From Anthoceros angustus (lineage: Eukaryota > Plantae > Anthocerotophyta), in NCBI GenBank assembly GCA_010909165.1, contig MU008186.1, forward strand, positions 62,001 through 126,000: DNA of 64,000 nt, given 5' to 3'. The notes below the pieces were generated by a model. That model did not search any database. It saw only the letters and a list, made by a program, of their open reading frames with translations, and was not told the origin of the DNA. How positions within the stretch are numbered: position 1 is the stretch's first letter; every line of letters begins with the position of its first letter. Positions 11,203 to 58,907 of this stretch are shown here, piece after piece. The position numbers were made by a program, and so were the translations under genes.

Positions 11203-11918
11203 GATTGAATTTGCAAAGCGAAGGTCGTTGCACCTTGGTCACACTGTAATAATTCCTGTACATATTTTGGTAAAGGCCTCCTCCAGCTTTGTCCCACGCA
11301 GCTGCTTTGTCGACCTTTTCCTCGCCTTCGCAGAGACTTCAACATGCCAGGCTGAGTAGAGGGGCAGATGGCCAACATGCCAGCCTGTGCTTTGATCTCC
11401 AACTTGAGGCTCGAGAACATCGACTGCAGCTGAAAGAACAACAGCCAGAAGAACAATCTCTTTCACCAAGTCACTGCATTCATATCCTCAAAGCCGAAAA
11501 TCGATTTGCGGTGTCGCATGCAACTGGATGGGTGAAGCAACTGGTCTTCGATATCAGGCTGCAATTTTTGTCGTATCACCGAGTGGACGTTAGGCTCGCT
11601 ATTGTGGACCTTCGTTACCAAGGTGGAGCTCGTTCTTCAAATCTTGGCAGCATAGGCAGGTGCATTCGTCACGACGGTTCCGAAACTGAAAGGCAGACAT
11701 GTAGGGAAGCTGTTCCATAAGCAGGTTCTAGACGATGCTGCAGGGTAAAAGCTTGGGAGGGCTATGTACTGGTCGAAGGTACTCCGGAGCCTCCAATGGG
11801 CTAGTCACCATGTTCCCTCAAGGGCGGGGGGAACCCTCTCGCCATTAACTGTGCCATGGGCTGAATCCAATCGACTGAGTACCACTGCTTTCTCCGCTTG
11901 GCAGCTCACATCAGGATC

Positions 11919-14660
11919 ATGCAGATGTTGCATGAAGCTGTGGCATCCGCACTTTCTCCAGCTTCATCACAGGTTGGGAATCACAGCTCGCAGAGGAACC
12001 CTGAGCAGGCTTGCCTTCTTCAAAAATTATGCAAGGAAGAAAGGCTCAACGAGGTCATGGATGTGCTGGTGGGCCTGGACCAAGAAGCTTCAGTGCCAAT
12101 GTATGTGTCTCTTCTGCAAGTCTGCATCAGACGGAAGGCTCTGGATGAGGCCAAGCAGCTGCATTCCCATCTGGCAAAATATGGTTTAGAGTCGAACAGC
12201 GTTGTAGGAGAATGGGTTGTGAACACGCTGGTGAAGTGCGGGAGCCTAGTAGATGGGCTCTTGGTGTTCGGAAGATTGTCATCGAGAACGGCTTTCTCCT
12301 GGACGGCCATCTTGACAGGCCTTTGCAAGGCTGGGAAATTTCGGGAGGCTCTTAGATGGTATGTGCAGATGCTACAGGAAGGAGTTCGCCCAAACAGCAA
12401 TATCTTTGTCAGCTTAATCCAAGTTTGTGGCAGATTGGGAGACCTGGAAGAGGGCAGGCGGATTCATGCTGACGTAATCAGGTATGAGTGTGACTGCAAT
12501 GTGTTCGTGGGGACAACTCTTATAAATATGTATTCAAAGTGTGGTAGCATCGATGATGCTAGACAGGTGTTTGATGGATTGGCTTCACGGAATGTGGTGT
12601 CTTGGAACGCAATGCTTGCAGCATATGCCCAGCATGGTCAAGGAGAACAGACTTTGCTGCTGTATGACCAAATGCTGGAAGATGGAATGGATCCAAATGA
12701 ACGAACATTTGTCAGTGTGCTTCAAGCCTGCGCAGGCATGGCAGATAGGGAAGAGAGCATCCTTGTAGGTGAGCTGTCCATCAAACTGGAATCTCTAGCT
12801 ATTGGAAAGGCACTACATGCTGAAGCTGCCTGGTTAGGTTACGAGGCGGATGTTTTTGTGGGCAGCAATCTGGTGAGTTTGTACTCAAAGTGTGGGAGCT
12901 TCACAGACGCTCAACATGTTTTCAACCACCTCCCCCGGCGGAATGTTGTGGCTTGGAATGTGATGCTTGCAGCATTTTCTCGTCACGATCAAGAAGAAAC
13001 AGCATTGCAGTTATATGGTCAAATGGAAGAAGAAGGCGTCACTCCAAGCAGTCGAACCCTGATCGTTGCTCTCCAAGCATGCATAGCTCTTGCAGCGAAG
13101 GAAGAAGGCATGCTTGAAAATAGCTATCCTATGAAAGTGGGGTCGTTACAGAAGGGGAAGATACTACATGCTGATGCTGCTCGGAGGGATTATCATTCTG
13201 ATGTATTTGTTGGTAGCACGCTTGTGAATCTGTACTCAAAGTGTGGAAGTCTTGTGGACTCCCAACTTGTGTTCGACAAACTCCCCAAGAGGGATGTTGT
13301 GGCATGGAGTGGGATTCTTGCAGCATACGCTCAGCAAGAGCATGGGGAGAAAGCTTTGCAACTTTTCAGCCAAATGCAAGAGGTGGGCGTCACCCCTAAT
13401 GCTTGGACTTTGGTCAGTGCCATACAGGCATGTGGCAGTCTTGCAGAAAAGGAGGTGGAGAGCGTTCTTGTTGATGGCCAATCCATCAAATTGGAGTCGC
13501 TGCACAAGGGAAGGGCATTGCATTCTGAAGCTGATTCGAGGGGTTATGGATCAAATGTATTTGTTGGCAACACTCTGATAAGCATGTATGCAAAGTGTGG
13601 AAGCATGGTAGATGCTGAACTTGTATTTGCCGGGCTGCCTCAGAGGAGTGTGGTTTCATTCAATGCAATGCTTGCAGCATATGCTGAGCAGGAGCAAGGA
13701 GTAAAGGCTTTGCAACTCTATGAAGAGATGAAAGCAAGTGGTTTGAAAGCAAACGACGTCACTTTCCGGTTCATTCTAGCCGCTTGCAGCAAGATTGGAG
13801 CCTTGAACAACTGTTTCCAAATCCACCGAGATATCGTGGATGGTGGGTTCGAGTTAGATCCTGCTGTGGTGACCTCTCTTATTCATGCATACGGCAAGTG
13901 TGGGAGCATGTTGGATGCTCAACGTGTGTTCGACTCACTGCCCCAGCACACTTTACATTCATGGACCGCGATGATTGCTGGGTATGCGAGACAAGGGCAG
14001 TATGAGAGAAGCATTCGATGCTATGAGCAAATGTCTGTCTCAGGCCTCAAGCCAAATGGGATTACGTTTCTCTCAGTCCTGACTGCATGCAGTCATGCTG
14101 GGCTGGTGGATGAAGGCCTCAAGTACTTCAACTGCATGACCAGCTATCATGGGATTCCTGCGGAGATAGAGCATTATGCATGCTTGATTGACCTCCTTGG
14201 TCGTGCTGGACTCCTCGGCCAGGCAGAAAAGCTGCTTCTAGGAATGCCCATGGAGCCTACATTGCCTATCTGGATTTCATTGCTTGGAGCCTGCCGGAAG
14301 CATGGGAATGTGGAGATGGGTAGATGGGCCTTCGAGTGTGCAGCCCAACTGCAGCCAAGCTGCGGTGCAGCCTATCTGCTCATGTCCAATATCTATGCTC
14401 AGGCTGGAATGTGGGACTACGCAAATGACATAGCTGAGATGGAACTGGGTGCGGGTGCATGGAACTACAAGCCTGCTAAAAGCTGGGTAGAGGTGAATGA
14501 GAACATCCACACATTCACCACGGGCTCAGATGTCCTGCATCCAGAGCTGCTTGACCTGCTTGAGGAGCTGAGCTCCGACCTCGGGACAGCTGGTAAACTC
14601 AACGTGCCCTTCGGCAGATTGAAGGCGAATCAGTTGCTCACTCACTCACAAAAGCTCTAG
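11919..14660 (+). CDS. PLS-class PPR protein with E1/E2 and a truncated KP-like C-terminus (organellar RNA editing factor)
   Basis: Repeating P-L-S motifs (VVSWNAMLAAYAQHG / FVSVLQAC / VFVGSNLVSLYSKCGS), P2-L2-S2, E1/E2 (WISLLGACRKHG, AYLLMSNIYAQAG), then KPAKSWVEV. No HxE/CxxC. The tracked ORF starts at TTG 11898; the first ATG is 11919. Confidence 0.9.
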   Translation: MQMLHEAVASALSPASSQVGNHSSQRNPEQACLLQKLCKEERLNEVMDVLVGLDQEASVPMYVSLLQVCIRRKALDEAKQLHSHLAKYGLESNSVVGEWVVNTLVKCGSLVDGLLVFGRLSSRTAFSWTAILTGLCKAGKFREALRWYVQMLQEGVRPNSNIFVSLIQVCGRLGDLEEGRRIHADVIRYECDCNVFVGTTLINMYSKCGSIDDARQVFDGLASRNVVSWNAMLAAYAQHGQGEQTLLLYDQMLEDGMDPNERTFVSVLQACAGMADREESILVGELSIKLESLAIGKALHAEAAWLGYEADVFVGSNLVSLYSKCGSFTDAQHVFNHLPRRNVVAWNVMLAAFSRHDQEETALQLYGQMEEEGVTPSSRTLIVALQACIALAAKEEGMLENSYPMKVGSLQKGKILHADAARRDYHSDVFVGSTLVNLYSKCGSLVDSQLVFDKLPKRDVVAWSGILAAYAQQEHGEKALQLFSQMQEVGVTPNAWTLVSAIQACGSLAEKEVESVLVDGQSIKLESLHKGRALHSEADSRGYGSNVFVGNTLISMYAKCGSMVDAELVFAGLPQRSVVSFNAMLAAYAEQEQGVKALQLYEEMKASGLKANDVTFRFILAACSKIGALNNCFQIHRDIVDGGFELDPAVVTSLIHAYGKCGSMLDAQRVFDSLPQHTLHSWTAMIAGYARQGQYERSIRCYEQMSVSGLKPNGITFLSVLTACSHAGLVDEGLKYFNCMTSYHGIPAEIEHYACLIDLLGRAGLLGQAEKLLLGMPMEPTLPIWISLLGACRKHGNVEMGRWAFECAAQLQPSCGAAYLLMSNIYAQAGMWDYANDIAEMELGAGAWNYKPAKSWVEVNENIHTFTTGSDVLHPELLDLLEELSSDLGTAGKLNVPFGRLKANQLLTHSQKL

Positions 14661-15057
14661 CAAATCAAGGCACAAGCAGTTAAAGATTTGCTTTGATAAC
14701 AAAGGAAGAAGACGTGTTCAAGCGCATTACATGGATAAGAGCATGTCGCGGACATGAACAACATGGCCACGGTGCCAAAGCTGATCTTTTCCGCGGGGTC
14801 CACATTTGGTTTGCCGTCGCAAACATTTGAAGATGATAGAATAACGATAAATGGTGCGAGTGTATGGTGTGTTCTACATAAGGGCTCTAGGTGACATCGA
14901 GACCTGGACGGCAAGGAAGTGGCTAAGGAAAATCCAGCACTAGTGTGCTGAATTTCAGGCCTCTTGGCTCGCGCGACTCCAGCGTCTAGCCCCTTTCAGC
15001 TTGAAGCTCAGGAGCTTCTCTGGCAGTTCGCACGAGGGTTTTCTTTTCCCTGCAGGC

Positions 15058-16297
15058 ATGGATTTGCGACAAGAGATCCAGAAGCAAACTGAATTCACAG
15101 TCGATTTTTATAAGCGGATTGCCGATCAGCATCTTGGCTCGAATGTTGCGGTTTCTGCCATCAGTCTGTCCATCACGCTGGCTTCGGCAGCAGCTGGAGC
15201 CCGAGGATCTACTCGTGATCAGTTCCACTCCAGCAGCTTGAGGCTGCCAGGCGGGGATTTTCTGCATGAGTTTGCCGACCAGCTGAAGTCCCAGGTTCTT
15301 GCGGACGGCAGCAGCAATGGAGGACCTGTGCTAGCGCTTGCAAACGGTGTTTGGATGGAGAAGACGTTAGAATTGAAGCCACGTTTCCTACAGATCTTGA
15401 AGGAAAAGCATCACAGTGAGACGCGGCCATCGGACTTCCTGCACAAGGTATGTTGGTCGGTAGTGGGCTCTGCCTCGTGTATTGAGCCCACTGGCGAGCA
15501 TTGTGAAGCATGGTGGTCGATTACGATGAATGCAGGCAGAGGATGTGAGGAGGGATGTGAATGCCTGGGCAGAGGAGCACACGCAAGGCAGGATCAAGGA
15601 CCTGCTGCCGCCAGGTGGTGTGGACAGGGACACCGGGCTGGTGTTGGCCAATGCCATCTACTTCAAGGGCAGATGGAGGGAGCCATTTCTTGCTTCGGAT
15701 ACCAAGAATGACACCTTCTACCGGCTGGATGGAACAACCGTGACTGTGCCCATGATGACCAGCAGGAAGGATCAGTATTTGAGCCATTTCCATGAAGACG
15801 GGTACAAAGTGCTTCGGCTTCCTTATGCCCAAGGAAGGGATAGTAGGTCCTTCTCCATGTACTTCTTGCTGCCTGATCAAAGGACTGGACTGCCTGATCT
15901 GGAGAGAAAGCTGGACCCATCGTTTTTGGGACAGAAGTTGGACAGGCTGCACAAAGGTCCAGTTTCTGAGTTCAAGCTTCCACGGTTCAAGATCTCTTCC
16001 CAGCTCGACGTCCCGAGTGTGCTCAAGAGTCTGGGTCTGGAGCTGCCTTTCTCTCAGCAGGCAGACTTCGGTGACCTGGTGGAGGCCCCCGTGTGCCTGT
16101 CAAATGTCTTCCACAAGGCTTTCGTCGAAGTGAACGAGGAGGGCACAGAAGCAGCTGCTGCCACAGCTGTTACCATATCCCTGTTGTCTTACACTCCACC
16201 TCAACACTTTGTTGCAGATCATCCATTTCTGTTCGTCATCAAGGAAGACCAGACTGGGTTGGTGTTGTTTGTGGGCAAGGTGACAAGCCCAGCATGA
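15058..16297 (+). CDS. Serpin, copy 1 (exons 15058-15447, 15536-16297); RCL P2-P1-P1' = Leu-Leu-Ser
   Basis: Motifs [28 protein letters not shown] and [13 protein letters not shown]. One 88-nt GT-AG phase-0 intron joins the two ORFs. Confidence 0.93.
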
Positions 16298-16705
16298 ATC
16301 ATGGCATTAGCAGCCCGCTCCACTCCTTGAAGGAACCTGTGACAAGCCCATGAATTCAAGTAGCTGCAGCCTGCAGTCTTTGTGTGAGGAAGTGTTCGAA
16401 TACTGCACAGCATAGGGGCTTGACAGGCTGACACTGGGCAAAAACTTTCGAAACCCTGGCCGCTTCTCAACAGAACGCTGATTGTTCGTAAAAAAGATGC
16501 CAAGGACAACGCAGTTTATCCCACAATGGTCACCATGTTGTAGAAGGCCAGCCACGAGGACCAACGGGACGCAGCCATGTGGAGCGTGACACGTACTTGC
16601 GTCCCCCATCTTCAGCTTCACAAACTTTCTCACAAGAGGCAGCGAGTTGGCTGCCTTGTTTGTGATCCCGGCAGATTGCATCTGGGTCGGCATCATCCTC
16701 CCGGA

Positions 16706-17971
16706 ATGGATTTGGTGGCAGAGATCCAGAAGCAGACCGAGCTTGCGGTGGATCTGTACAAGCGGCTCGCAGAGAAGCACCCTGGCACCAATGTGGCTGT
16801 CTCTCCGATCAGCATAGCCGTGACTCTGTCCATGGTGGCAGCTGGAGCTCGGGGCCCTACCCTCGACCAGTTTCACTCTAGCCTGAAGCTGCCAACCGGT
16901 GATCTGTTGCATGAGTTTGCAGCCCAGGTCAAAGCTCTCATTCTTGCCGATGCCGGCAGCAGCGGAGGGCCTTCCCTGGTGGTTGCAAACAGCGTGTGGG
17001 TGGAGAAGGGGTTGAACTTGAAGCCACCCTTCCTGCAGATCCTGAAGGAAAAGTACCACAGTGAAGCACGGCAGTCAGACTTCCTTCACCAGGTACGGCT
17101 TCAGACTGGGTTCCTTGGCACTCTTTCTTGGCAGATCGGGTCGTGGGGATGGCGCATTGTAAAGAGCTACCTGTCATGGTGAAGTGTGCAGGCAGAGGAT
17201 GCAAGGAAGGACGTGAATAACTGGGCAGAGGAGCACACCCAAGGCAAGATCAAGGACTTGCTGCCACCGGGAAGTGTGGATAGCGACACACGGTTGGTGC
17301 TGGCCAATGCCATCTACTTCAAGGGGACATGGGAGCATCCGTTCGCTGATTCCGACACCAAGGACGACACCTTCTACTTGCTGGATGGAAAAACGGTAAC
17401 AGTTCCCATGATGACCAGCACCAAGGAGCAGCACATCGGCCACTTTCCTACCCACGGATACAAAGCTCTTCGGCTGCCATATGCTCAAGGCAGTGACAAC
17501 AGGTCCTTCTCCATGTACTTCCTGTTGCCTGACGAGAGGATGGGGCTGCCTGACTTGGAGAAAACGCTGGACCCAGCAGCTCTGCACGAAAGCCTGCCCC
17601 GGCTGAGAAAAGGTCCTGTTTCTGAGTTCAAGCTTCCACGATTCAAGATCTCCTCCCACTTCGACGTCCCTGATGTGCTCAAAAGTATGGGGTTGGTGCT
17701 TCCTTTCTCTGACAAGGCAGACTTCTCTGACCTGGTGGAGGCCCCTGTGTCCCTCTCGGATGTGTTCCACAAGGCTTTTGTACAGGTGAACGAGGAAGGA
17801 ACAGAGGCTGCTGCTGCCACAGGTGCCACCATGATGCTTAAATCGCTGCGTATGCCTCAAGAGCCTCAAAGCTTTGTTGCAGATCATCCGTTCCTCTTCG
17901 TCATCAAGGAAGACCGTACTGGTCTTGTATTGTTTGTAGGGAAGGTGACACACCCCTTGATGGATGCATAG
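16706..17971 (+). CDS. Serpin, copy 2 (exons 16706-17092, 17192-17971); RCL P2-P1-P1' = Leu-Lys-Ser
   Basis: Same serpin motifs as copy 1 and a 99-nt intron at the identical position; tandem paralog. Confidence 0.93.
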
Positions 17972-21870: not shown

Positions 21871-23019
21871 GTCATAGCTTTGGCCTCTTCATAACACTCT
21901 TGCATCAGATATCCTATGATGGCACTCGAGCCCTCGCAAGCATATACTACCAAGACCAAGATATTCCTAAGATATCCTATTGGCATCATCATATGCCAGA
22001 AATATCCTAAGAATATACTATAGTATGCAAGGAATATACTAACGCATATTACTTGTGCTTATCTACTTAGCTATTGCTAACCATGTTTACTTTAACACTA
22101 ATTAATCAATTCTTAATTAACATAAGTGCTTTAGAATAATTACTACTAATTACTCACTTAAAGATAAGTAATTAAATTAATTAATTCTAATCAAGCACTA
22201 AACCCAAATGCAGAGATTAGTGTCACACGGCATGACATGTGCCGAAGTTGTCTGTGCTCCAGTCTATCTTATGGGATCATCTTACTTTATCTTACAATTA
22301 TAATTACTGTGACAGTGAAATCTGATAAAGACTTATTCTGTTTTACAATATATACATAAGACTTATATACATAATTTTATAATAAATAGGTAATTACATG
22401 TTATGTAATTACATTTTTCGTTATCGTAAGATGTAACTATGAAATACCATTTTACCTTACAATAGTAATAACTACCATAATAACTACGGTGCAGGGGTCA
22501 TATATTGAAGGACCAAACCACCGGAATATATGCTCAAGGTTGGTGAGTTCAAATTATGGGCAAAAATTAATATATCGAGTAATATGTATCATCAAAGACG
22601 CGTTTCGAGTAGATTTGTCATTCTAGGGTTATTATGGCTAACATGTTCTATATTGTGTTCTACTCACCATTTTTTGGATAAAATGTTCTATATTTTTAGT
22701 ATGCCGAGGGGGCTTGTCCATGATCACAGTCATTATATCATCCTCTGCGCGCACACACCACAGATATTACAAGAATTAGACCATTAATTAATATTTAAAC
22801 CGCATGTTTCAATAGAAAAACCAACATATTATTTATATACCAAAAATAAAAAACAGAATACATTATAATATTCATATACCACAAATAAGAAAACAATATA
22901 TTATAGTGTATCCAAACCAAAATATTATTTATAAATTATAATAATGAAGACAATGCAGTATATTGCATCCAAAAGCCACATATTGTGTATATGTGGAGCC
23001 TCCAAATGGCTTAGGCCAA

Positions 23020-24170
23020 ATAGACACACATTTATAAAAATACAGTGATTAAACATCCTGAACCAAGATCGATACTTAGATGGGGTGCCTAAAGGAAGTG
23101 GATGCCCTTGGTGCAAATAGCTTAGACACACCATGGTACAAGTTGTTAAGTACCAAGTCACATGAACGAAATCCGTCCTTAGTGGACTTAAATAAAATAA
23201 TTCTTCTTTTTCTTCTCCCCCAAGTGGAAACCCTAAATTTGAGCCCTAAAAAACGCTCCCAAATGAGACGCCGTACGCGAGCTCCGAAAAGTACGGAGCC
23301 ATCCTCCATGTGACCCCTCTACTAAAAAATGGTTTCCGAGCCTTTTGCCGGGAACCGGGACCCGCTCCCTCAAGGTGCCATGGTGCCATGGTGCCATCTG
23401 CCATCTGGCCCTCAGGCTGGAGGGCTGGTGTTGAAGCCAGTGTGTGAGAAGGGAAAGGAAGATGTGCTTTGAGGGCATGCTGACAAGCTAGCTCTGGCAT
23501 TTGGTCTGTTGAACACTCCGAGTGGGACACCTTCGGTGGTAACGAAGAATCTACGCATGTGCAGTGACTGCCACGTCTCCACTGAGAACATAGCGTTCTT
23601 TCTTGGGGTGAATGTGCTTGCTTTACTCCATCCCTAGCCTGTCCAAACTGAGCGATGGGGATGGTTGGCTCGCTCGTGTGGATGCTTGTGATCTGGCTGG
23701 GTCAAGGAGTGCAGGCCTGGAATTTGGCTCAGATCCAGTGGAATCAGGGCAGCGGTTGCTGGATCGAGCTGGCAGCCGTGGCAGGGAGCGTCCGAGGTCA
23801 AGAGTGGAAGGAAGCGCGGCGAGGACGCGGCTCTGTCAACATCCCATCGCATTCCATCCCATCCCGGCTTGGGCTAGGTGTATCCCTAGCTGGGCCACAG
23901 CGGCGGTGTCGGACGTGCCTCGCAGATGATCCGGAATCAGCCTCGGGCTTCGCTTGTGTGTCTAGAAGAAGTATATCACAGTCCACTTGGATGGACGGAA
24001 TTTTTCCTGTCAGGGGACTTGGTACTTAATTAAACCATTCGTACCATGGTGTGCCTGAGCTACGTGCACCAAGGGCATCCACTCCCCTAGGCACCCCATC
24101 TATCTAAGTACATATGTACCGATCTAAGCGGAAGATGCTTAATAACAGCGTGCTTATAAATGTGTGTAAG
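23020..24170. mobile_element. Putative non-autonomous TIR element: diverged ~170-190-bp inverted repeats (23020-23187 and 23981-24170) enclosing captured sequence
   Basis: The left arm (acacacatttataa...gatc..tacttagatggggtgcct...gtggatgcccttggtgca..tagct.ag.cacaccatggtac...taagtaccaagtc...tccgtcc..agtggac) matches the reverse complement of the right arm in long blocks. No target-site duplication identified. Confidence 0.7.
23410..23595 (+). pseudogene. Isolated DYW:KP-type deaminase domain fragment
   Basis: Translates LVLKPVCEKGKEDVL*GHADKLALAFGLLNTPSGTPSVVTKNLRMCSDCHVSTE, matching the KP-type DYW consensus. TGA replaces Cys at 23470-23472 and HAE has become HAD. No PPR motifs adjacent. Confidence 0.88.
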
Positions 24171-24460
24171 GAAATCAGGGTGTGTAGCCACTGGCTGTGT
24201 CAGCTGGCCCAAGGGGACAAATGGACGCAAATGAACAACTGGTGATGGAGGTGGCAACTCCGTTTGTCCAATCCTGGATGGGAGGGTTTGGAGGATGAGA
24301 TGGAGGTGGTTGGAAGTGGTGGATGCAGCGTTGGACTCTTTCGTCGCGAGTTGCGGCCTCAGCACATTGCCAATGTTGCCGGAGCCCTATGCTGCTGTGA
24401 GGCTCGCGAATCTTGCAAGGGCTTGGCCCAGCCAGCGACCTGGTTTAGTTGCAGGTAGAT

Positions 24461-24544
24461 TTCATGCTCAGGAGCTGGCAAAGTTTTGTGTAGTGATCTT
24501 CAAATTCATGCTCGGGAGCTGGCAAAGTTTTGTGTAGTGATCTT
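24461..24544. repeat. Tandem duplication of a 40-bp motif, period 44
   Basis: ttcatgctc(a/g)ggagctggcaaagttttgtgtagtgatctt occurs at 24461 and 24505, with a partial third copy near 24696. Confidence 0.85.
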
Positions 24545-25102
24545 TATTCTTGGCTCAAATTGAGCAATCCTTTGAGATACTTTGAGAGGTCCTCGACTCT
24601 TACAAGCTTCATTCTTGGGATGGACAAGACATCCCATCCCATCCCATCCCACTCTCTCTGCTAGACTGTCGGTGTGGCCAAGTTGTGGTTTGGACAGGAG
24701 CTGGCAAAGTTGCTTTGGGCTTCCACCGCCGCAAGCCGAATCTCAAAATTCGTGCACCATGGTTGGTGTTTCGTGTCTTTTATTATTGTTTATGTTGGAC
24801 CGTTTCGTGCTCTGAGTCGTCTCATGAACGGGTCAATGTCATAAGGGCGGGCCGCGGAAGGATTCAGCGCTACGCAAAATATGTACAGTGGCCGGGCCCC
24901 AGCCGTCTCTTCCGTGCGTGGGTACAGTCCTATCCGGAGCTCGAGGCACGGAAAGGCCGAGGAACAAATCAAACCAGATCATGAAAAAGGATGAAGCTTC
25001 ACATTCAAGCCTCCCGGCTCCCTATGTCCTACTCCAGCTGCCCCCGTCTTCTACGTCTGCTGCTCCAGCTCCAGCATTGCCATAGCCGCCTTCCGAGCAT
25101 TC

Positions 25103-25223
25103 TGAGCTGGAGCAGCTGTAGCGGCTGGAGCAGCGGTAGCGGCTGGAGCAGCTGCAGCAGCTGAAGCTGAAGCAGGAGCAGCAGCTGAAGCAGCAGCAGC
25201 AGCTGAAGCAGGAGCAGCAGCTG

Positions 25224-25257
<34 letters not shown>

Positions 25258-25259
25258 TG
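25103..25259. repeat. CAG/CTG-rich low-complexity tract ending in (CAG)10
   Basis: Seen directly; 15-18-bp sub-repeats (cagcagctgaagcag, ctggagcagc.gtagcgg). Confidence 0.9.
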
Positions 25260-25265
25260 TAGGAG

Positions 25266-28175
25266 ATGTCATCCGTGTGGCCGGCCGAGTGCGCTGCGGG
25301 CAACCCGCCATGCCCGACCTGCCAGGCCCGGGATGGCCTCGTCTCGGACTACTGCAATTGCATGGACGAGTACAACAAGCTGAACCAGGACCTGCGCACC
25401 AACAAGGTGGCCAGTGCCATCGGCGGGCTGGGAATTGTGGCGTACGCTGCGGCCTCCATCACGACCTCCATTTTCACCGGCGTGTCCTTGCCGAAGTTGG
25501 GAGCCGGCAGAAACAGGGCCTCCTCCAAGTCGCAGGATGATGGTGTGCGGGAGCAGAAGCTGGTGCGCCTGGAGCACGTCTACAAGCGGATGCAGCAGCT
25601 CGAGCTTCAGATTCCCACCTTGTTCTGTCCCCTCGGGAACGGATCCACCGTGCCTGCGGCTTACTACATGGCGAGGGGATCGTGGCACACGGGAAGCGCC
25701 TCCGGTTCCCGGCTTCAGCAGCTTCCATCCGTCGAATACAGGGGATCGCAATGTGCCCCTGACACATGGAATGCGGCTCCGGTTCCCGGCTCCAGCAGCT
25801 TCCATCCGTCGAATACGGTGGATCGCAATGTGCCCGCACGGATCCCTGGACCTGGATATAGCCCTGGAGTGTCCATGGCACCTTCGGAGCGTGCAGGGAG
25901 GTATGCGGTTGGATCAGTTCAGCGCGGGGACTGCCATGATCCTCCCCATGCAGAATTAGGGTTCGACGATGGGAACCGGGCAGGGTCGGGAGAATTTGCA
26001 AGAGGTCACCAGATCCCTGTTGCAGGGCCGTACCGTGGGGGCATGGGAGATGGCGTTGATCCGGCAACGATGCGTTCTTCAGACTGGTCTCGTGGCACCA
26101 TGTACCAACACGGCCCTGCAGCTCCTGCGGAACTCTACCGTCCAGGCGCTGGGACAGGGTCTGGAGGTGTGTCAGGGGGAGGAGGAGGAAGTTCCCATGG
26201 TGATAACTCACGGATGCGAAACACGGGGCCTCCTGCACACGTTCCTGCTGCTCATCTGTACCATGTGGTGGGAGAGGGTGTTGAGCCAGCAAGGCCGCGT
26301 TCTTCAGACTCCTCCCGTGGCACCATGTACCATCGTGGATATTCTGATCACGGCTCTGCAGTTTCTCGACAAACGTACGATGGAGGCTCTGGAGGTTTAT
26401 CGGGAGGAGGAAGTTTCTATGGTGATCACTCACGAATGGTGAACACCGGATCAGCTACATACAATCCTGCTCCACAGGTCTACCATGCGGTGGTGGAGGG
26501 GGGTTTTGATGGGAGTGGTGTGCTCCACGCCGGAGGGCCTTCGTCTGGGGGGCAGGCAAATCATGCACCTGCTGATCTGTACAATGTGGTGGGAGAGGGT
26601 GTCGAGCCAGCGAGGCCGCGGTCTTCAAACTCCTCCCGTGGCACCATGTACCATCGTGTATATTCTGATCTCGGTCCTGCAGTTTCTCGAGAAACGTACG
26701 ATGCAGGCTCTGGAGGTTTATCGGGAGGAGGAAGTTTCTATGGTGACAACCCACGAATGATGAACACGGGATCAGCTACACACAATCCTGCTCCACAGGT
26801 CTACCATGCGGTGGTGGAAGGGGGTTTTGATGGGAGTGGTGTGGTCCACGCAGGAGGGCCTTCGTCTGGCGGGCAGGCCAATCATGCAGCTGCCCATCTG
26901 TACAATGTGGTGGGAGAGGGTGTTGAGCCAGCAAGGCCGCGGTCTTCAGACTCCTCCCGTGGCACCATGTACCATCGTGGATATTCTGCTCACGGCCCTG
27001 CAGGTTCTCGAGAAGCGTACGATGCAGGTTCTGGAGGTGTATCGGGAGGAGGAAGTTTCTATGAGGACAGCTCACAAATGATGAGAACGGGATCAGCTAC
27101 ACACAATCCTGCTCCACAGGTCTACCATGCGGTGGTGGAAGGGGGTTTTGATGGGAGTGGTATGGTCCACGCAGGAAGGCCTTCGTCTGGCGGGCAGGCC
27201 AATCATGCAGCTGCTGAGCAAAATGAAGACTCGGCCGAGGATTCGAGTTCAGAGCAGTCAGATGGCGATGAGCAAGGTGACATCTCACGGCCTCAGGAGA
27301 TGGAAGGCAGTGCACACCTTATCCAGGGTCAACCTCCTCATATCCGGGAAGAAGCAACCTCGTCAGGTGAGGAGACTTCAGAGGATGAGGAAGAAGACGA
27401 AGAAGAAGAGGGAAAGGAAAGCCCACAGCCCCAGGCTCAATGGGTATCACAAAAACCGGCTGGAAGGCCACCAGAGTCTGCTACGGGCTGGAGAGGGCCT
27501 CCAGGGGGCAAGGGACAACTCGTTGCTCAATCGTATAGTGCACAGCCGGGTGCTCAATCATACGATGCACAGCCTGGTGCTCAACCGTACAATGCCCAGC
27601 TGGGTGCACAGCCTCATCAAGCACCGCCTACAGGACAACCACAGCCTAAAGGACAACCGCAACCACAGCCTAGAGGACAACCGCAACCACAGCCTAGAGG
27701 TCAACCGTCCCCTACAGGGTGGAGTGCTGAAGGTCAGGTGCTGCCTAGTTTTGCCCATGCTTCGCTTTCGCAGCCACCGCCTAGAGGACAACCGCAGCCA
27801 CCGCCTGGAGGGCAACCGCAACCTCAGCCAAGAGGACAACCACCCCCTGCAGGGTGGCGCCCTGAAGGTCAAGTGCTGCCTAGTTCTGCCCATGCTTCCC
27901 TATCGGTGCAGTTTCAGGAGTCCATGAACCTCCGTGAGGTGTCCCCGAGTGTTCAGCAGCGGCCAGCGGTGGGTCCTGGAGCGGGAGCAAGATCTATGAA
28001 CGGAAACCATGCCTGCGATGTCTGCACCAGAAGCTTTCAGCCACAGGAGTCTCTATACAAATGCAAAACCTGCTGGAGTGTGAGTTTGTGTGCCTCGTGT
28101 CACAGTAGGCGTGATTTCGTCCACCCTGATCACCAGTTCACGCCTTCCTCTTTCAGTTTGCAAGTTTCTCAATAA
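25266..28175 (+). CDS. 969-aa repeat-rich protein: Cys-containing/hydrophobic N-terminus, 107-aa repeats, acidic block, Q/P repeats, C-terminal ZZ-type zinc finger
   Basis: Single long ORF. The C-terminus CDVC...YKCKTC...LCASC...HPDH fits the ZZ finger spacing. The main repeat period (321 bp) is a multiple of 3 and keeps the frame. Confidence 0.8.
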   Translation: MSSVWPAECAAGNPPCPTCQARDGLVSDYCNCMDEYNKLNQDLRTNKVASAIGGLGIVAYAAASITTSIFTGVSLPKLGAGRNRASSKSQDDGVREQKLVRLEHVYKRMQQLELQIPTLFCPLGNGSTVPAAYYMARGSWHTGSASGSRLQQLPSVEYRGSQCAPDTWNAAPVPGSSSFHPSNTVDRNVPARIPGPGYSPGVSMAPSERAGRYAVGSVQRGDCHDPPHAELGFDDGNRAGSGEFARGHQIPVAGPYRGGMGDGVDPATMRSSDWSRGTMYQHGPAAPAELYRPGAGTGSGGVSGGGGGSSHGDNSRMRNTGPPAHVPAAHLYHVVGEGVEPARPRSSDSSRGTMYHRGYSDHGSAVSRQTYDGGSGGLSGGGSFYGDHSRMVNTGSATYNPAPQVYHAVVEGGFDGSGVLHAGGPSSGGQANHAPADLYNVVGEGVEPARPRSSNSSRGTMYHRVYSDLGPAVSRETYDAGSGGLSGGGSFYGDNPRMMNTGSATHNPAPQVYHAVVEGGFDGSGVVHAGGPSSGGQANHAAAHLYNVVGEGVEPARPRSSDSSRGTMYHRGYSAHGPAGSREAYDAGSGGVSGGGSFYEDSSQMMRTGSATHNPAPQVYHAVVEGGFDGSGMVHAGRPSSGGQANHAAAEQNEDSAEDSSSEQSDGDEQGDISRPQEMEGSAHLIQGQPPHIREEATSSGEETSEDEEEDEEEEGKESPQPQAQWVSQKPAGRPPESATGWRGPPGGKGQLVAQSYSAQPGAQSYDAQPGAQPYNAQLGAQPHQAPPTGQPQPKGQPQPQPRGQPQPQPRGQPSPTGWSAEGQVLPSFAHASLSQPPPRGQPQPPPGGQPQPQPRGQPPPAGWRPEGQVLPSSAHASLSVQFQESMNLREVSPSVQQRPAVGPGAGARSMNGNHACDVCTRSFQPQESLYKCKTCWSVSLCASCHSRRDFVHPDHQFTPSSFSLQVSQ
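26240..27210 (+). repeat. Three ~321-bp coding tandem repeats within the ZZ-finger gene
   Basis: LY(H/N)VVGEGVEPARPRSS recurs at ~26255, ~26576 and ~26897; shadow ORFs in the track also repeat with period 321. Confidence 0.9.
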
Positions 28176-50437: not shown

Positions 50438-51500
50438 ATCTGATCAGCAGCTGCAACAAAGATGACTGTCACATGTCCTCAGCTTCCACCTTCCACACCC
50501 CATTGCCAAACCCAAAGATTTGCGTGCCCACTTGGGCTGGGTCAGATCAAACTTCTTTCAACTCAGCTGCCTGGCACCAAATTTGAGGCATCCGCCAAAA
50601 TCAACACGATCTTCGTGCAAGCAGCGAAAGGGAAATTGCAATTCAACGACAGAGATGGACCCGAAACAAGTCGTGAAACGGAAGAGCTGCACGAATTTTT
50701 TTCTGCATTATATCGAACAACTACAAAATGTGGCCTGGTGCACGCCATGGCACATCCAGGGTGGAGTCCTTCCAAATCCACCAAATTCGGCATCCCACTA
50801 TCCTAAAAACTCAGAATCCTGCTACACATTACTCAAACAACTGCCTCCGGAAAAACTGTAACCTACAAGAGTGCCATCAAGTGCGGTGCTGGGCTCACCC
50901 GACCGCCACTAACGGTAAAACAGAAGGCCCATTCCTGAAGCTCAGGAATCAGCATCAGGCACATGCATTCAAATGCTGTACATGAAGTCGTCGCTCGCCC
51001 CCCAAAGCCCCCGGCGGACAAAAGATCGTGAATTGAAGTATTCAACACAGGAAACAGGACTATGCTCGGAAGTCTCCAGACCCATCACACCCAGCGCTAC
51101 CAATCGCAGAGATGGTTCTCAATTTAGGACCACCTGAAATATTGTGGGCACATCCTTTGTGTTTCTGTGCTGGAACGGAACGCTGACACCTGGCAAGGGC
51201 ACAGCTACGCAACGGTTGTCTGGGTACTCGTATTCCTGCATTGAAATGCTATACCGCGTGCAGCTGGAGGGAGCTTTGAGCAGAGGAGTGTGGATGTGGT
51301 GTGTCCCTGTGTACAGGAGGCTTGTCTTCGTTGCCGACTGATCTGACCTCTGTGAGTTTGGAGCATGTCCAACATGGAAGTTGGTGTGAAAGAACCTACT
51401 AACCTGTTGGCGCAGCAAAGATTAGCATGTCCTGTGCATGATCTTTCGTTCTGCATTGTGGATTCATGTGATGTGGTGACATGTAGTCGATGTGCTTATC

Positions 51501-54500
51501 ATGGCTGCCTGGCGAGTGGTTGCATTTTATTCACACAGGGTGAGCTGTCCAAGAGATCGTCTGGCCGGGGAGAATGGGCAGCAGTATCTCCTGAGGCGAC
51601 AGTTTTCCCTGAACCATACACTCTGGTGGGGTAGCAAGCAACATGATCGTGGCCCAGACAGGCCTTCAGGATACCAGGAGGGTGTAACGGCTGATACTGT
51701 GAGCAAACTCTGTCAGCAGAGACAGCTCACTGAGGCTGTTGAGGCCCTGGGAGTTCTGGTGCAGACAGAATGTCGTGTTTCTCAGTGTCTCTTTTATACT
51801 GTGCTGAAGAACTGTGTGGCTGAAAGGGATCTTGTTGGGGGTCGGCGGGTCCATGCGCTCACCCTGCTGACGGGTCATGAGTCTGACACGTTCCTCTGCA
51901 ACCACTTCCTGCGAATGTATGCTTCTCATGGCAGGTTGCAAGAAGCGATGGATGTGTTTGAACTGGTGGCCGAAGCAGATGCCTTCACGTGGTCTGCCAT
52001 AATTTCTGCCCATGTGAAACAGGGGCAGGATAAGCAGGCCATACAACTGTATCATCAGATGTGTAGGGCAAGCGTGAAGCCAGATGGGTATGTGTTTGTA
52101 GCAGCCCTTCAGGCGTGTGCCAGGGGAGCGGACTTGAAAAGTGGGCAGCAGGTGCATGCTCACGTATTGGCTAGTGGGTTTGAGCGTGATTCTTTTGTCT
52201 GTAATTCCTTAGTGGACATGTATGCAAAGTGTGGTAGCTTGGAGGACGCTCAAAGACTGTTTGATGGACTTGGTACAAAGAATGTGGTTACATGGAATGC
52301 CTTGATAGCAGGGTATTCCCAGCAGGGCAGAGGGCAGGAGTCTCTTCATCTCTACAGTGAAATGCAAGAGGAAGGCATTGCTGCACCCGATGCAGTGACT
52401 TTTGTGAGCCTTCTCCTGGCTTGCGCAAGTTTGGGCACGCCAGGTCTGGAGAAGGGGAAGCTGCTTCATGCACAGCTTAGAGAATGTGGATATCAAGCTG
52501 ATCCTTTTGTGGCCAACAGTCTGGTCAACATGTATGCAAAGTGTGCCAAGGGCATGAGCCTGGAAGCCCTCCATCTTTACAGCACCATGCAACAAGAAGG
52601 CATGGCTGCACCCGATTCTGTCACATTTGTGTGCCTCCTCCAGGCATGTGCAAGTGTGGGTACCCTGGGTTTGGAGAAGGGGAAGCAGCTTCATGCACAA
52701 ATTAGAGAATTAGGACTCCAAGCTGATGTGATTTTAGGGAGCAGTTTGATGAACATGTATGCAAAATGTGGCAGCCTAGATGATGCTCGTGGCGTTTTTG
52801 ACAAACTCGGTCAAAAAGATGTGGTGACATGGAGTGCCATGATAGCAGGATATTCCCAGCAGGGTATGGGACAGGAAGCCCTTCATCTTTACAGTGCTAT
52901 GCAAGGAGAAGACACGGTTTCACCCAATTCTGTGACATTTTTGTGCCTCCTACAGGCGTGTGCAAGTGTGGGCAACCCAGCTTTGCAGAAGGGGAAGCAG
53001 ATCCATGCACAGATCAGAGAGCAGGGACTCCAAGCTGATGTGATTTTAGGAGCAGTTTGATGAACATGTATGCAAAATGTGGCAGCCTAGATGATGCTCG
53101 TGGCGTTTTTGACAAACTCGGTCAAAAGATGTGGTGACATGGAGTGCCATGATAGCAGGATATTCCCAGCAGGGTATGGGACAGGAAGCCCTTCATCTTT
53201 ACAGTGCTATGCAAGGAGAAGACACGGTTTCACCCAATTCTGTGACATTTTTGTGCCTCCTACAGGCGTGTGCAAGTGTGGGCAACCCAGCTTTGCAGAA
53301 GGGGAAGCAGATCCATGCACAGATCAGAGAGCAGGGACTCCAATCTGATGTCTCTGTCGCCAACAGTTTGGTGAACATGTATGCAAAATGCGGCAGCCTA
53401 GAGGATGCTCGGGACCTGTTTGACAGGCTTAGTGAAAAAGATGTGGTAACGTGGAGTGCCATGATCGCAGGATATTCCAAACAAGGTATGGGGCAGGAAG
53501 CCCTTCATCTGTATGGTGTTCTGCAAGAAGAGGGAATCATTACACCCACTGCTGTGACATTCGTTTGCCTGCTGCAGGCATGTGCAAGTGTAGGCACCCT
53601 GGCTTTGGAGAGGGGGAAGCAGCTCCATGCACACATCAGAGAAGTAGGAGTTCAGGCTGATGTGTTTGTAGCCAACAGTTTGGTAAACATGTATGCAAAA
53701 TGTGGCAGCCTAGAGGAAGCTCAAGCTGTGTTTGACGGACTTGGTCAAAAAGATGTTGTGACATGGAGTGCCATGATAGCAGGATATTCCCAGCAGGGTA
53801 TGGGACAGGAAGCCCTCGATCTTTACAGTGCGATGCAAGAAGAAGGCATCGTTGCACCCAATTCTGTGACATTTTGTGCCTCCTGCAGGCGTGTGCAAGT
53901 GTGGGCAACCCAGCTTTGCAGAAGGGAAGCAGCTTCATGCACAGCTTAGAGAATGTGGATATCAAGCTGATGTGTTTGTAGCCAACAGTTTGGTGAACAT
54001 GTATGCAAAGTGTGGCAGCCTAGAGGAAGCTCAAGCTGTGTTTGACGGACTTGGTCAAAAGATGTGGTGACATGGAATGCCATGATAGCAGGATATTCCC
54101 AGCAGGGTATGGGACAGGAAGCCCTCGATCTTTACAGTGCTATGCAAGAAGAAGGCATCGTTGCACCCAATTCTGTGACATTTTGTGCCTCCTGCAGGCA
54201 TGTGCAAGTGTGGGCAACCCAGCTTTGCAGAAGGGAAGCAGCTCCATGCACACATCAGAGAAGTAGGAGTTCAGGCTGATGTGTTTGTAGCCAACAGTTT
54301 GGTAAACATGTATGCAAAGTGTGGCAGCCTAGAAGATGCTCAAGCGTGTTTGATAAACTTGATCAAAAATGTGGTGACATGGAGTGCCATGATAGCAGGA
54401 TACTCCCAGCAAGGCATGGGTGATGAAGCCCTTTGTCTGTTCAAGGCTATGCAAGAAGGCATGGCTGCCTTGGTTCAGCGACATATGTGTGCCTCCTGCA

Positions 54501-56541
54501 GGCATGTGCAGGCGTGGGCAACCCGGCTTTGAGAAGGGAAGCAGCTTCATGCACAAATTAGAGAATTAGGACTCAAGCTGATGTATTTGTAGCAAGCAGT
54601 TTGGTTAATATGTACGCAAAGTGTGGCAGCCTAGAGGAAGCTCAAGCTGTGTTTGACGGACTTGGTCAAAAGATGTGGTGACATGGAATGCCATGATAGC
54701 AGGATATTCCCAGCAGGGTATGGGACAGGAAGCCCTTCATCTTTACAGTGCTATGCAAGAAGAAGGCATCGTTGCACCCAATTCTGTGACATTTGTGTGC
54801 CTCCTGCAGGCATGTGCAAGTGTGGGCACCTGGCTTTGGAGAGGGGAAGCAGCTCCATGCACACATCAGAGAAGTAGGAGTTCAGGCTGATGTGTTTGTA
54901 GCCAACAGTTTGGTAAACATGTATGCAAAATGTGGCAGCCTAGAGGAAGCTCAAGCTGTGTTTGACGGACTTGGTCAAAAAGATGTTGTGACATGGAGTG
55001 CCATGATAGCAGGATATTCCCAGCAGGGTATGGGACAGGAAGCCCTCGATCTTTACAGTGCGATGCAAGAAGAAGGCATCGTTGCACCCAATTCTGTGAC
55101 ATTTGTGTGCCTCCTGCAGGCGTGTGCAAGTGTGGGCACCCTGGCTTTGGAGAAAGGGAAGCAGCTCCATGCACAAATTAGGGAACGAGGACATCAAGCT
55201 GATGTATTTGTAGCAAGCAGTTTGGTTAATATGTACGCAAAGTGTGGCAGCCTAGAGGATGCTCAGGTCGTGTTCGACGGGCTCGGTGCAAAAAATGTGG
55301 TCACATGGACCGCTCTAATAGCAGGATATTCGGAGCAGGGCATGGGTCAGGAAGCCCTTCGTCTTTACAGTGCTATGGAAGGAGAAGGCATGGCTGCCTT
55401 TGGTTCAGCGACATATGTGTGCCTCCTGCAGGCATGTGCAGGCGTGGGCAACCCGGCTTTGGAGAAGGGAAAGCTGCTTCATACACAAATCACAGAACGA
55501 GGTCTTCAAGCTGATGTGTTTGTGTCGAGCAGCTTGGTGAACATGTACGCAAAATGTGGCAGCCTAGAAGATGCTCGAAGCGTGTTTGATAAACTTGATC
55601 AAAAAAATGTGGTGACATGGAATGCCATGATAGCAGGATACTCCCAGCAAGGCATGGGTGATGAAGCCCTTTGTCTGTTCAAGGCTATGCAAGAAGGAGG
55701 CACAGTCGCACCTGATTCTGTGACTTTCGTGTGCCTTCTGCAGGCATGTGCAAACGTGGCAGCTTTCCATCTGGGAAGGCAGCTCCATGAGCAAATCAAA
55801 GAACAAGGGCTCCAAGCTGATGGACTTGTAGCCATCAGTTTGATAAACATGTATGGAAAGTCTGGAAGCATGGCTGATGCGCAGCTGGTCTTTGAGGCTT
55901 TGCCCGAGAGAGACGTTGTGGCATGGACTGCACTGATAGCAGGATACGCTCTTCAAGGGGAGACTAAGGTTGTGTTTGACTTGGTCCAGAGAATGGTAGA
56001 GGGTGGCATCCAGCCTGTCGGCATCACGTTTCTTAGTGTACTAACAGTCTGCAGCCACGCCGGCCTTGTGAACAAGGGTAGAGAGTATTTTGATGTTATG
56101 AGCACACAATATGGTATCACTCCCACAGTGGAACACTACACATGTATGGTGGATCTCCTGGGCCGAGCAGGCCGACTGGATGAGGCACTGGCTTTGGTTA
56201 GGACGATGGCTGTAGTGCCCAATGCTGCAGTTTGGCACACTTTGTTGGGTTCTTGTCAAAAATGGAGCAACGTGGAACTGGGACGCCACGCTTTTGATGA
56301 AGCTGTGAAGCTAGACAAGAAAGATGTTGCAGCATATGTGTTGATGTCAAACATATACACCAATGCGCAGATGTGGGAGCAGGCCGAGGAGATGCAGGCG
56401 AGGAGGAAAGGAATCAGGGCCTGGAAAGAACCAGGCCAAAGCTGGTGGACAGACATGGACGGGCTAGTTCATAGCTTTTTTGTTGGGGATCGGCAGCATG
56501 CCGAGGGTGAAGGGCAGTCTACTCACATATGCAAGGGCTGA
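51501..56541 (+). CDS. Very long PLS-class PPR protein (~1,680 aa if corrected) with E1/E2 and WW-type box; apparent frameshifts between 53040 and 54830
   Basis: About a dozen near-identical 312-bp P-L-S triplets. The end reads WHTLLGSCQKWSN...AYVLMSNIY...WKEPGQSWWTD. Frameshifts are mostly 1-nt deletions in homopolymers relative to sister repeats. Confidence 0.8.
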
Positions 56542-57450
56542 AAGAGCTTCTGGCACAAAAAACGAAAAGCAGATTTGATCTGTGACACAGCTTCTTTCAA
56601 AGTGAACGAAAAGCTGATCTTGTTCATGAAGCCCCATTGACGTTTTTCATCGCCTTGGTCATACTATCACAGGTGCTGTAGAGGACGACTTTAGACATGG
56701 AACTTAGTTGTCTCTTCCTATTCCGACTCCTTCATATTCCCACCCAGGGGCCTCGCTTAAAGTTCTCATGGAGATGGGCTCACCCATTTCTGCTCAGGTA
56801 CTCAATAAAATGCACTTTCAGCAATAAATCGATTCTCTACATACCCTCATTACTACGGTGTCCAAGGAAACGTTATAGGTCTATACCCTGTATCGGCTGT
56901 GAACGGGCGTTCACGCTATCACAATGCGAAAAGCTTGGGACGACTTGGAATCCCGCAATGTGAGGTCCGCAACCCATAAGAACTGTGCCACATTCGCACA
57001 GTTTCAGTTCGTTCTGCGCCTCATCTTGCGAAAGCGGGACCTGTTAGATGGCCACAACATGGCAACTGGACCCGCTGTGGACCCAACAAACTGGTGGGAG
57101 CACAGGGATTCTACCAGGAGCTTGCGCTCAGCTCATCCCAGGGAGTGAAGTGCGCAGCAATACAAGGAACCCATCAATTCTTAGGCAATCTATCGCTGGT
57201 GAAGGAAGGAGTGTCCAGCGACGGTCAATTTTTTGTGGGTCCTACAATATGGTTGGACAACAGGCGACACAAGAAGATACGACTTCCGGCGTAAGGGCTC
57301 CGGCGAGGTCGTCTGGTTAGACAGCTCTTCCAAGCCACCTTGGGTGGATGAGCAGCTGGTTGCCTAGCATATGCAGATGGGTCATGGTGATCTCCTTCCA
57401 AGTCCACCTTTGCGGATAAGTTTGAGGCTGGCAGGCCTGCAGGATCGGAA

Positions 57451-58590
57451 ATGGGGGTATCGGCTATAACAGTGAGCACATTATGTCAGCAGGGCAGGCT
57501 TACTGAGGCTGTTGGAGCCCAGGAATTTCTGGCGCACACAGACTTGTCTTCGACGGTTCTGGCTGCAAAAGATAGAATGCCCTGCTTCCTGGGTATGTAC
57601 AGCAAGGGCTCTCTCAAAAGGCACTTCTTCTGGTATGGACAAATGAAGCAGGAGAGCCTGATTCTGGGATCCTGGCAGATGGAGTTACTTTTGTTTGCCT
57701 TCTGAAGGCCTGTGCAACTGCTGGTGCCTTACAGCTGGGGAGGCAGGTGCACTCACAGATTGTGGACAGAGGACTGCTAGGCAGTGACATACTCGTGGGC
57801 AACTGCCTGGTGGACATGTATGCATAATGTGGCGAACTGGAAGGTGGTCGCAGCGTATTCGACAGTCTGGCCCAAAACAATGTGGTGACATGGACTGCCC
57901 TGATAGCTGGTGTGGTACTTGTGGTCAAGCTCACAACGCACTAGCTCGTTTTGAGGAGATGTTAGCCGCTGGGATTCAGCCTGATGATGCTACTTTGACT
58001 TGTCTGAGTAGCATGCAGTCACGAGGGACTGTTGAATGAGGGTCGCAAGCACTTCGATGCCATGGTTGAGCAGCATGGCATCAAGCCTACTATTGAGCAT
58101 GACAACTGCATGATTGATCTTCTTGCAGAGCACATGCTATGATCATGTGAGAGCCAGGACGACGTTGCGGGGCTGAATGCCTGCAAAAGTTACGGGGACA
58201 TAGAAAGGGTCAAGGCGGTGCTTTGGAAGTCTTGTTAGACTAGACCCTCAGCGGGCGTCCGCATACGTGCTCATGGCCTAATGTCTATGCAGAGCATGAA
58301 TGTACTTCTGAAGGACGAAGGTGGCCACGTACCTCAGACAAAGTTGGGGTTGAAGCCACTGTCAGAGAGAAGGAAAGGAAGAAATGCTTTGCGGGCATGC
58401 TGAGAAGCTGGCTTTGGCGTTTGGTCTTTTCAACACTCCCAGTGGCACGCCTCTGCGGGTAACCACGAATCTTGGCATGTGCAGTGACTTGCCACAGTTC
58501 TACCGAGATCATGTCAAGGGTTGGAAAGAGGGACACTGTGGTAAGAGATGCTCACCGTGTGCATCCATCTGCACCTGCTTGTTGTAGTTT
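57451..58590 (+). pseudogene. PLS-E-DYW:KP PPR pseudogene (U-to-C editing factor class)
   Basis: Degenerate PPR motifs with a stop (TAA 57825-57827) and frameshifts, then EGGHVPQTKLGLKPLSE / KEEMLCGHAEKLALAFGLFNTPSGTPLRVTTNLGMCSD(+T at 58489)CHSSTEIMSRVGKRDTVVRDAHRVH. Confidence 0.88.
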
Positions 58591-58907
58591 GTCAACAAAG
58601 TGTTGTATGTAGAAATTCAACAGCAACTACACTTTGTTGAAGTTTAGCACATATCAAAGTTCGTTAAAATAGGGCAACAAGCTCGGACAATTTTGTTTTG
58701 AGGAGGCTGATTCATTATTAATCCAACTGACACTCTGAATTTATAAGACAGTGCGAACATGTTTGCTACTAGTAGCGATATAGAAACCGACCATGCAGAA
58801 CACCAATCCATGCAGAAATTTCATATAATACTTGGTACAGCATATTTGTGACAACTTTATGAAATCATCTAATGAGAGCTGTTCTTCACAATTGCTCTTC
58901 ACAACTT

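Follow-up and report, generated by a model that had tools for sequence, protein, structure and literature searches.

The Locus and Its Neighborhood

We analyzed a 64-kb stretch of DNA, called the window throughout, in which positions are counted from the first nucleotide. The window is gene-dense and contains no obvious transposons. A structure of 1144 bp with inverted ends, hereafter the element (23024–24167), lies within the 3.3 kb that separate two divergently oriented genes. One of these, a minus-strand gene for a PHD-finger protein, begins near position 21992; the other is a single open reading frame (ORF) of 969 codons with a C-terminal zinc finger on the plus strand (25266–28175). Further to the left lie a seipin gene (8.9–11.2 kb), a PPR gene with a truncated DYW end (11898–14660, plus strand), two serpin genes (15001–17971, plus strand), and an ORF that encodes a KRI1 C-terminal domain (about 19.6–20.0 kb). 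To the right follow a minus-strand dynein heavy-chain gene, with Pfam-matching ORFs from about 29.5 to 40.7 kb and a possible extension to about 51000, a long plus-strand PPR array (51492–56541), and a decayed PPR-DYW:KP pseudogene (57450–58600, plus strand).

Several features of these neighbors deserve description in their own right. The 969-codon ORF contains several internal repeats of about 100 residues (...VGEGVEPARPRSS.SSRGTMYHR...), runs rich in proline and glutamine (PQPQPRGQ), and a Cys/His zinc-finger-like C-terminal end with weak UBR/C1 Pfam hits. Word searches with the 969-residue protein, either whole or limited to residues 1–150, returned zero relatives, and none of the three proteins encoded beside the element has an exact match on record. 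An (AGCAGC)n tract (25105–25256) runs immediately upstream of and across the start of the same ORF. The dynein gene is distributed over many exons, gives Pfam hits to AAA_6, AAA_5, MT stalk, AAA_9, AAA_lid_11 and Dynein_heavy, and is of the axonemal type; its product presumably serves sperm flagella. Each of the tandem serpin genes consists of two ORFs, and in both the break falls at Pfam position 120/121, which suggests a conserved intron. The left flank of the element (22000–23023) is a 1-kb AT-rich block with 28–31% GC and a degenerate 39-bp tandem repeat at 22811–22905. The right flank contains 52% GC and a 44-bp unit repeated 1.9 times with 97% identity (24461–24544), of which a third partial copy is found at 24695–24711.

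The three PPR loci of the window differ in their state of preservation. The gene at 11898–14660 is an intact-looking PLS-type ORF of 913–920 codons with the box NYKPAKSWVEV, but its DYW domain ends early (...LLTHSQKL-stop), at about the position where the HxE motif would be expected. This gene is a truncated, "E+"-like editing factor, and a serpin gene starts within about 350 bp downstream. Its best relatives in the database share 44–50% identity and are likewise E+-like. Four long contigs from a related hornwort sequencing run (SRR33208241) that best matched this gene (11919–14657) were considered as the orthologous locus and rejected: they show no synteny and represent paralogues. The array at 51492–56541 consists of at least four ORFs (51492–53060, 53131–53949, about 54064–54532, and 54793–56541) with near-identical PLS triplets at a spacing of about 305–310 bp; one unit (54669–54830) shares 96% protein identity with another unit of the array. 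An E motif closes the array together with a PG-type box (KEPGQSWW); a deaminase core is absent. Either the array has recently expanded by internal tandem duplication and acquired frameshifts, or it is a pseudogene. The pseudogene at 57450–58600 is interrupted by many stops and frameshifts, and the surroundings of its KP box are deleted; it retains the sequence HAEKLALAFGL and a CSD|CH motif that is split by a 1-nt insertion.

Two Inverted Arms

A sequence-only reading of this region had described two diverged inverted arms. These arms are real (blastn E value 2e-23), and a gapped local alignment that joins the collinear inverted blocks allowed us to refine their coordinates slightly, to 23024–23207 for the left arm (plus orientation, 184 nt, 37.5% GC) and 23964–24167 for the right arm (minus orientation, 204 nt, 45% GC). 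Their identity, which had been judged by eye at roughly three-quarters, amounts to 152 of 180 aligned columns (84%) in this local alignment, or to 71.6% over 208 columns when gaps are counted (blastn). The number of gap events depends on the aligner (6 with MAFFT, 11 with the local aligner), and the MAFFT alignment otherwise agrees with the local alignment. The K2P distance between the arms is 0.175. Since no other inverted repeat of at least 40 nt with arms up to 20 kb apart is found across the 64-kb window, we can exclude that the pair is part of the background.

Conservation is uneven along the arms. The outermost 14 nt (ACACACATTTATAA) are the same in both, whereas the approximately 40 nt just inside these termini are only about 60% alike. 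The two arms share their boundaries, with ACACAC at the outer ends and TTCTTCT at the inner ends. The left arm carries a T/C-rich tail at its inner end, and the right arm contains an extra 12-nt palindrome (GTACATATGTAC) relative to the left arm. If the region were transcribed, the arms are predicted to pair as one stem of about 180 bp.

The arms have no further copy in the 64-kb window (blastn), no match to the genes of the window, and no match in 58 kb of DNA from the related hornwort run (Logan SRR33208241). Metagenome scans with the conserved arm blocks gave 0 matches, and scans against Rfam and for tRNAs revealed no similarity. The latter result eliminates a tRNA-SINE or a known RNA as the source of the arms. 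A pair of long terminal repeats can also be dismissed because the arm ends are not TG...CA and the orientation is inverted instead of direct. Finally, we rejected the idea that each arm is a separate MITE: neither arm has terminal inverted repeats of its own and, by inspection, neither is flanked individually by a direct repeat.

The Interior and Its Deaminase Fragment

The interior of the element measures 756 bp (23208–23963) and is richer in GC (54–60%) than the arms (38–45%). It consists of three parts. The left segment (23208–23394, 54% GC) and the right segment (23596–23963, 60% GC), the latter with a (CATCC)n run at 23840–23865, match neither a protein family nor other DNA in the window. 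Between them lies a piece of a DYW:KP-type deaminase domain on the plus strand (23395–23595). The interior was said to contain no transposase, and our Pfam search is in agreement: among the ORFs within the interior or overlapping the arms, the DYW piece provided the only match. A tandem-repeat search detected short repeats at 23374–23407 on the plus strand, namely (GGTGCCAT)x3 followed by (TGCCATC)x2.3. Their position coincides exactly with the 5' boundary of DYW homology in tblastn, and they are possibly the scar of a junction.

The deaminase piece comprises approximately 62–67 codons in one frame. Within it, an ORF at 23473–23637 matches the Pfam family DYW_deaminase (PF14432) over profile positions 24–69 of 93 with an E value of 1e-12. 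Searches by tblastn with KP-type DYW domains limit the homology to about 23395–23595, in a single frame without frameshift. Amino-acid identity to the best KP-type domains is 64–70% over 54–64 residues, and identity to another KP-type domain is 55% over 67 residues. The translation (...LVLKPVCEKGKEDVL-stop-GHADKLALAFGLLNTPSGTPSVVTKNLRMCSDCHVSTENIA) spans the HLP..LVLKP stretch and the HAD...CSDCH core up to STENIA.

This stretch had been characterized as a clean piece of the domain. The identity holds, but the piece is not clean. An in-frame TGA stop (23470–23472) replaces a residue that is cysteine in the relatives, directly before G-H-A-E, and the catalytic HAE has become HAD (23476–23484) by exchange of the catalytic glutamate for aspartate. 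Of the signature HxE(x)nCxxC, the zinc-ligand motif CSDCH (23560–23574) is intact, whereas HxE reads HAD and is preceded by the stop. The N-terminal box and the entire C-terminal third of the domain are missing. Given the in-frame TGA, the HAD motif, and the lack of a KP box and a C-terminus, the piece is dead as part of an enzyme; it lies between genes and belongs to none.

Assignment of the Fragment to the KP Type

The Lys-Pro box that defines KP proteins would lie outside the fragment, where homology starts only at 23395, and the assignment to this type therefore depends on other marks. One of them is the residue after the histidine of HxE: alanine at this position is specific to KP proteins, whereas PG proteins have serine (PMC9478123, PMC11845758). 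Cysteine in place of the serine also counts as a mark of the KP type. The fragment has alanine (H-A-D, 23476–23484). For a second line of evidence we queried 1.84 billion representative sequences with the DYW piece by HMMER, which returned 763 hits, and compared the cores of the best 150. Among these 150, the 12 cores of HAE type share on average 74% identity with the fragment and the 125 cores of HSE type share 64% (Mann–Whitney p 1e-8). The three single-stretch hits of highest identity (72%), one of which is a transcript from the hornwort Nothoceros aenigmaticus, contain KPA-type boxes (for example KKPAVAGIEV) and end in the non-DYW tails GGRP, GDHH and GDMYC. We found no KP consensus strings in the supplement of PMC9478123. 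Since the fragment is closest to HAE/KPA-box proteins with non-DYW tails and not to PG-type proteins, and since HAD retains the alanine, sequence comparison supports the DYW:KP type that had been proposed for the fragment.

Target-Site Duplication and Age

Insertion of a transposon would be expected to leave a target-site duplication (TSD). We searched for duplications of 8–11 bp (MULE), 8 bp (hAT), 3–5 bp (CACTA) and TA or TWA (Mariner/PIF), and allowed up to two mismatches. At the exact arm ends no TSD is present, with matches of 2/9 and 4/10 for the longer lengths and 2/3 for the triplets TAG and AAG. Displacing the ends by as many as 6 nt, at lengths of 2–12, gave a best score that half of random position pairs equalled. 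A direct repeat with 8 of 9 matching positions occurs at 22992 and 24181, flanking the arms at a distance of 23 and 13 nt. However, we found two repeats of this kind, and our own calculation predicts about 1.9 by chance. Thus, the 8–11-bp TSD that the Pack-MULE-like reading of the locus called for is not there, nor is a duplication of any other length at the arm ends or close to them. In rice, more than 99% of Pack-MULEs keep a TSD with no more than two mismatches (PMC8903248).

We estimated whether age could account for this result. A 9-nt TSD as old as the divergence of the arms would still pass in about 85% of cases, or in about 50–64% if indels are allowed for. At the indel rate of the arms, a neutral cargo of 200 nt and equal age would be expected to contain 3–6 indels; no frameshift is seen in the DYW fragment. 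This hints mildly at a cargo that postdates the divergence of the arms, or at arms that never were identical to each other. If the element is indeed younger than the divergence of its arms, the missing TSD becomes harder to explain.

The termini do not provide an assignment either: they could be attributed to none of the superfamilies MULE, hAT, CACTA, PIF and Mariner, and we know of no superfamily signature that fits them. MITEs are short (usually <800 bp), high-copy elements with a TSD, whereas the element measures 1144 bp, has no TSD, and occurs as a single copy in the window.

Origin of the Element

The sequence-only reading had placed the structure among Pack-MULE or Pack-TIR elements. 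Its long inverted termini, enclosed host fragment and lack of a transposase stand; a TSD and a second copy in the window do not materialize. On balance, we tentatively favor, at somewhat less than even chances, an old, now immobile, non-autonomous Pack-type TIR element of about 1.14 kb that spans 23024–24167. Such an element would have begun as a non-autonomous TIR-type DNA transposon with inverted ends of about 190 bp. By analogy with Pack-MULEs and Pack-CACTA elements, a transposase supplied in trans would recognize the arm ends. Gap repair after excision, or template switching, may then have copied host sequence between the ends, so that the original interior was replaced by host DNA including the 200-bp middle piece of a DYW:KP deaminase gene. 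The composite would have inserted between the minus-strand PHD-finger gene and the plus-strand 969-codon zinc-finger ORF, decayed after insertion, and would have no function today. Transposition and capture, like any superfamily behind them, are steps that we infer.

A number of observations are consistent with this Pack-type origin. With its E value of 2e-23, the inverted repeat is far beyond chance, and it has no counterpart in the window. Non-autonomous MULE-like elements typically have dimensions like those seen here (1.14 kb in total, about 190 bp per arm), and the 14 terminal nucleotides are perfectly conserved next to about 40 poorly conserved ones. The sharp limits of the cargo fit a gene fragment that was copied in, and the GC contrast between arms and interior is what foreign filling would produce. 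Pack-MULEs usually reside near gene starts in gene-dense regions, and here two gene starts lie within 1.1 kb of the element in a region of this kind. On the other hand, the TSD is missing, no other copy of the arms exists in the 64-kb window or in the 58 kb of DNA from the hornwort run, and flanks with 28–31% GC on one side and 52% on the other would make an odd pre-insertion site.

The absence of a TSD and the single-copy arms within the window would be expected if no transposon had been involved. A double-strand break could have been mended by fold-back or template-switch synthesis, in the course of which about 190 bp of nearby sequence were copied in inverted orientation and the gap was filled with ectopic DNA including 200 bp of a DYW:KP gene. 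Filler DNA from ectopic genomic templates is established at break-repair junctions in plants. The make-up of the interior, a patchwork of sharp-edged, GC-rich pieces unrelated to one another, agrees with such a repair event, as does the possible scar, (GGTGCCAT)x3 plus (TGCCATC)x2, exactly where the DYW piece begins. However, a multi-part filler of 756 bp together with inverted arms of 190 bp is large compared to known repair junctions. Furthermore, arms that started out identical and received their cargo in the same event predict the 3–6 cargo indels calculated above; observing none has a probability of about 0.003–0.04, or an estimated 0.02–0.2 when in-frame indels are allowed. We consider break repair a possible, though rather unlikely, origin.

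The disparity between arms that differ by 16% and a cargo with an intact frame would be accounted for if the arms were copies of one repeat family that had diverged beforehand. Two independent insertions of a dispersed repeat of about 190–200 bp (SINE-like or a solo fragment) in opposite orientation might have bracketed the DYW piece by chance. The coinciding arm boundaries (outer ACACAC, inner TTCTTCT) would then mark full-length copies of one unit, and the T/C-rich tail at the inner end of the left arm is in line with this suggestion. But neither arm has, on inspection, a flanking direct repeat or, on its own account, a terminal inverted repeat, similarity to tRNA or Rfam entries is absent, and additional copies are found neither in the window nor in the hornwort DNA retrieved. 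These observations make two separate insertions improbable.

Least convincing, and in our estimation very improbable, is an in-place relic, that is, a PPR-DYW:KP gene that decayed at this site with no role for the inverted repeat in the arrival of the fragment: truncated or decayed PPR editing-factor genes are common locally (11898–14660 and 57450–58600), but tblastn detects no trace of a PPR, E motif, KP box or C-terminal DYW part in 22000–25300, the 200-bp piece is still in frame with 64–70% identity to KP domains over most of its length, its edges are too sharp for uniform decay, and the local relic at 57450–58600 remains traceable as a whole gene despite stops and frameshifts throughout.

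Source of the Cargo

The search of 22000–25300 by tblastn also revealed no DYW remains beyond the fragment itself, and a tblastn query with one of the window's PPR proteins placed PPR repeats solely at 12–14.5 kb and 51.8–58.1 kb. Because most residues of the fragment and its frame are preserved although homology ends abruptly on both sides, we infer from its sequence that it arrived at this site already as a fragment, by copying. Gradual decay in place appears unlikely on the same grounds. The only DNA relative of the cargo within the window is a segment of the plus strand (58345–58512) inside the pseudogene at about 57450–58600, with 80% identity and a K2P distance of 0.178. We rejected this segment as the direct donor, since two frameshifts interrupt it within the span common to both, and none interrupts the cargo. 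It is a paralogue, and the near-match between its distance to the cargo and that between the arms (K2P 0.178 and 0.175) is probably a coincidence.

Implications and Comparison with Known Systems

Two consequences had been drawn from the presence of an editing-enzyme fragment in a mobile element. The first, a route for domain shuffling among PPR proteins, finds no sign at this locus, where the fragment is dead and located between genes. The second, regulation of the PPR family by small RNAs, does not follow from the predicted hairpin. The DYW piece would lie in the loop of this hairpin and not in the stem, so that primary small RNAs from the stem would match the arms instead of PPR genes. The model thus argues against targeting of PPR genes, and the regulatory idea would need further assumptions.

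What the locus offers at present is one dead fragment between two genes, read from its sequence as a DYW:KP piece copied to an ectopic site. Pack-type gene capture is well known in seed plants. We found no literature on such capture in hornworts or on capture of DYW:KP fragments. If the arms belonged to a transposon family with several cargoes, Pack-type capture would extend from seed plants to hornworts and would be tied to the very large and fast-changing family of PPR editing factors with its U-to-C (KP) branch. We regard it as quite unlikely that the arms represent a living or recently living hornwort family of this type that moves pieces of DYW:KP genes.

Compared with the DYW:KP domain of PPR U-to-C editing factors from hornworts, lycophytes and ferns (PMC9478123, PMC11845758), the fragment shares the core from H-A-x to C-x-x-C-H with NLRMC, and its nearest relatives are HAE/KPA-box proteins with tails of GRP, DRP or DMF type. 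It differs from this domain by holding only about 62–67 of about 133 residues, without the KP box or the C-terminal part, by aspartate in place of the catalytic glutamate, by the in-frame stop, and by the absence of an attached PPR array. With inverted-duplication hairpin loci, represented by young MIRNA and hairpin-siRNA genes, the region shares the predicted pairing of its arms, which upon transcription would form a stem of about 180 bp. Unlike in those loci, the arms described here match no gene of the window, and the gene-derived piece lies in the loop and would not be diced from the stem.

The closest comparison is with the Pack-MULE and Pack-TYPE elements of rice, maize and Arabidopsis (PMC8903248; Pack-CACTA, PMC6379663). 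The element differs from these in its host, a hornwort-type plant, in the lack of a TSD, and in being a singleton within the DNA searched, with no family or autonomous partner demonstrated; singletons are discarded by packFinder (PMC8903248). With Pack-TYPE elements it shares the long inverted termini, the size of about 1.1 kb, a transposase-free interior with part of a host gene, and its proximity to the 5' ends of genes.
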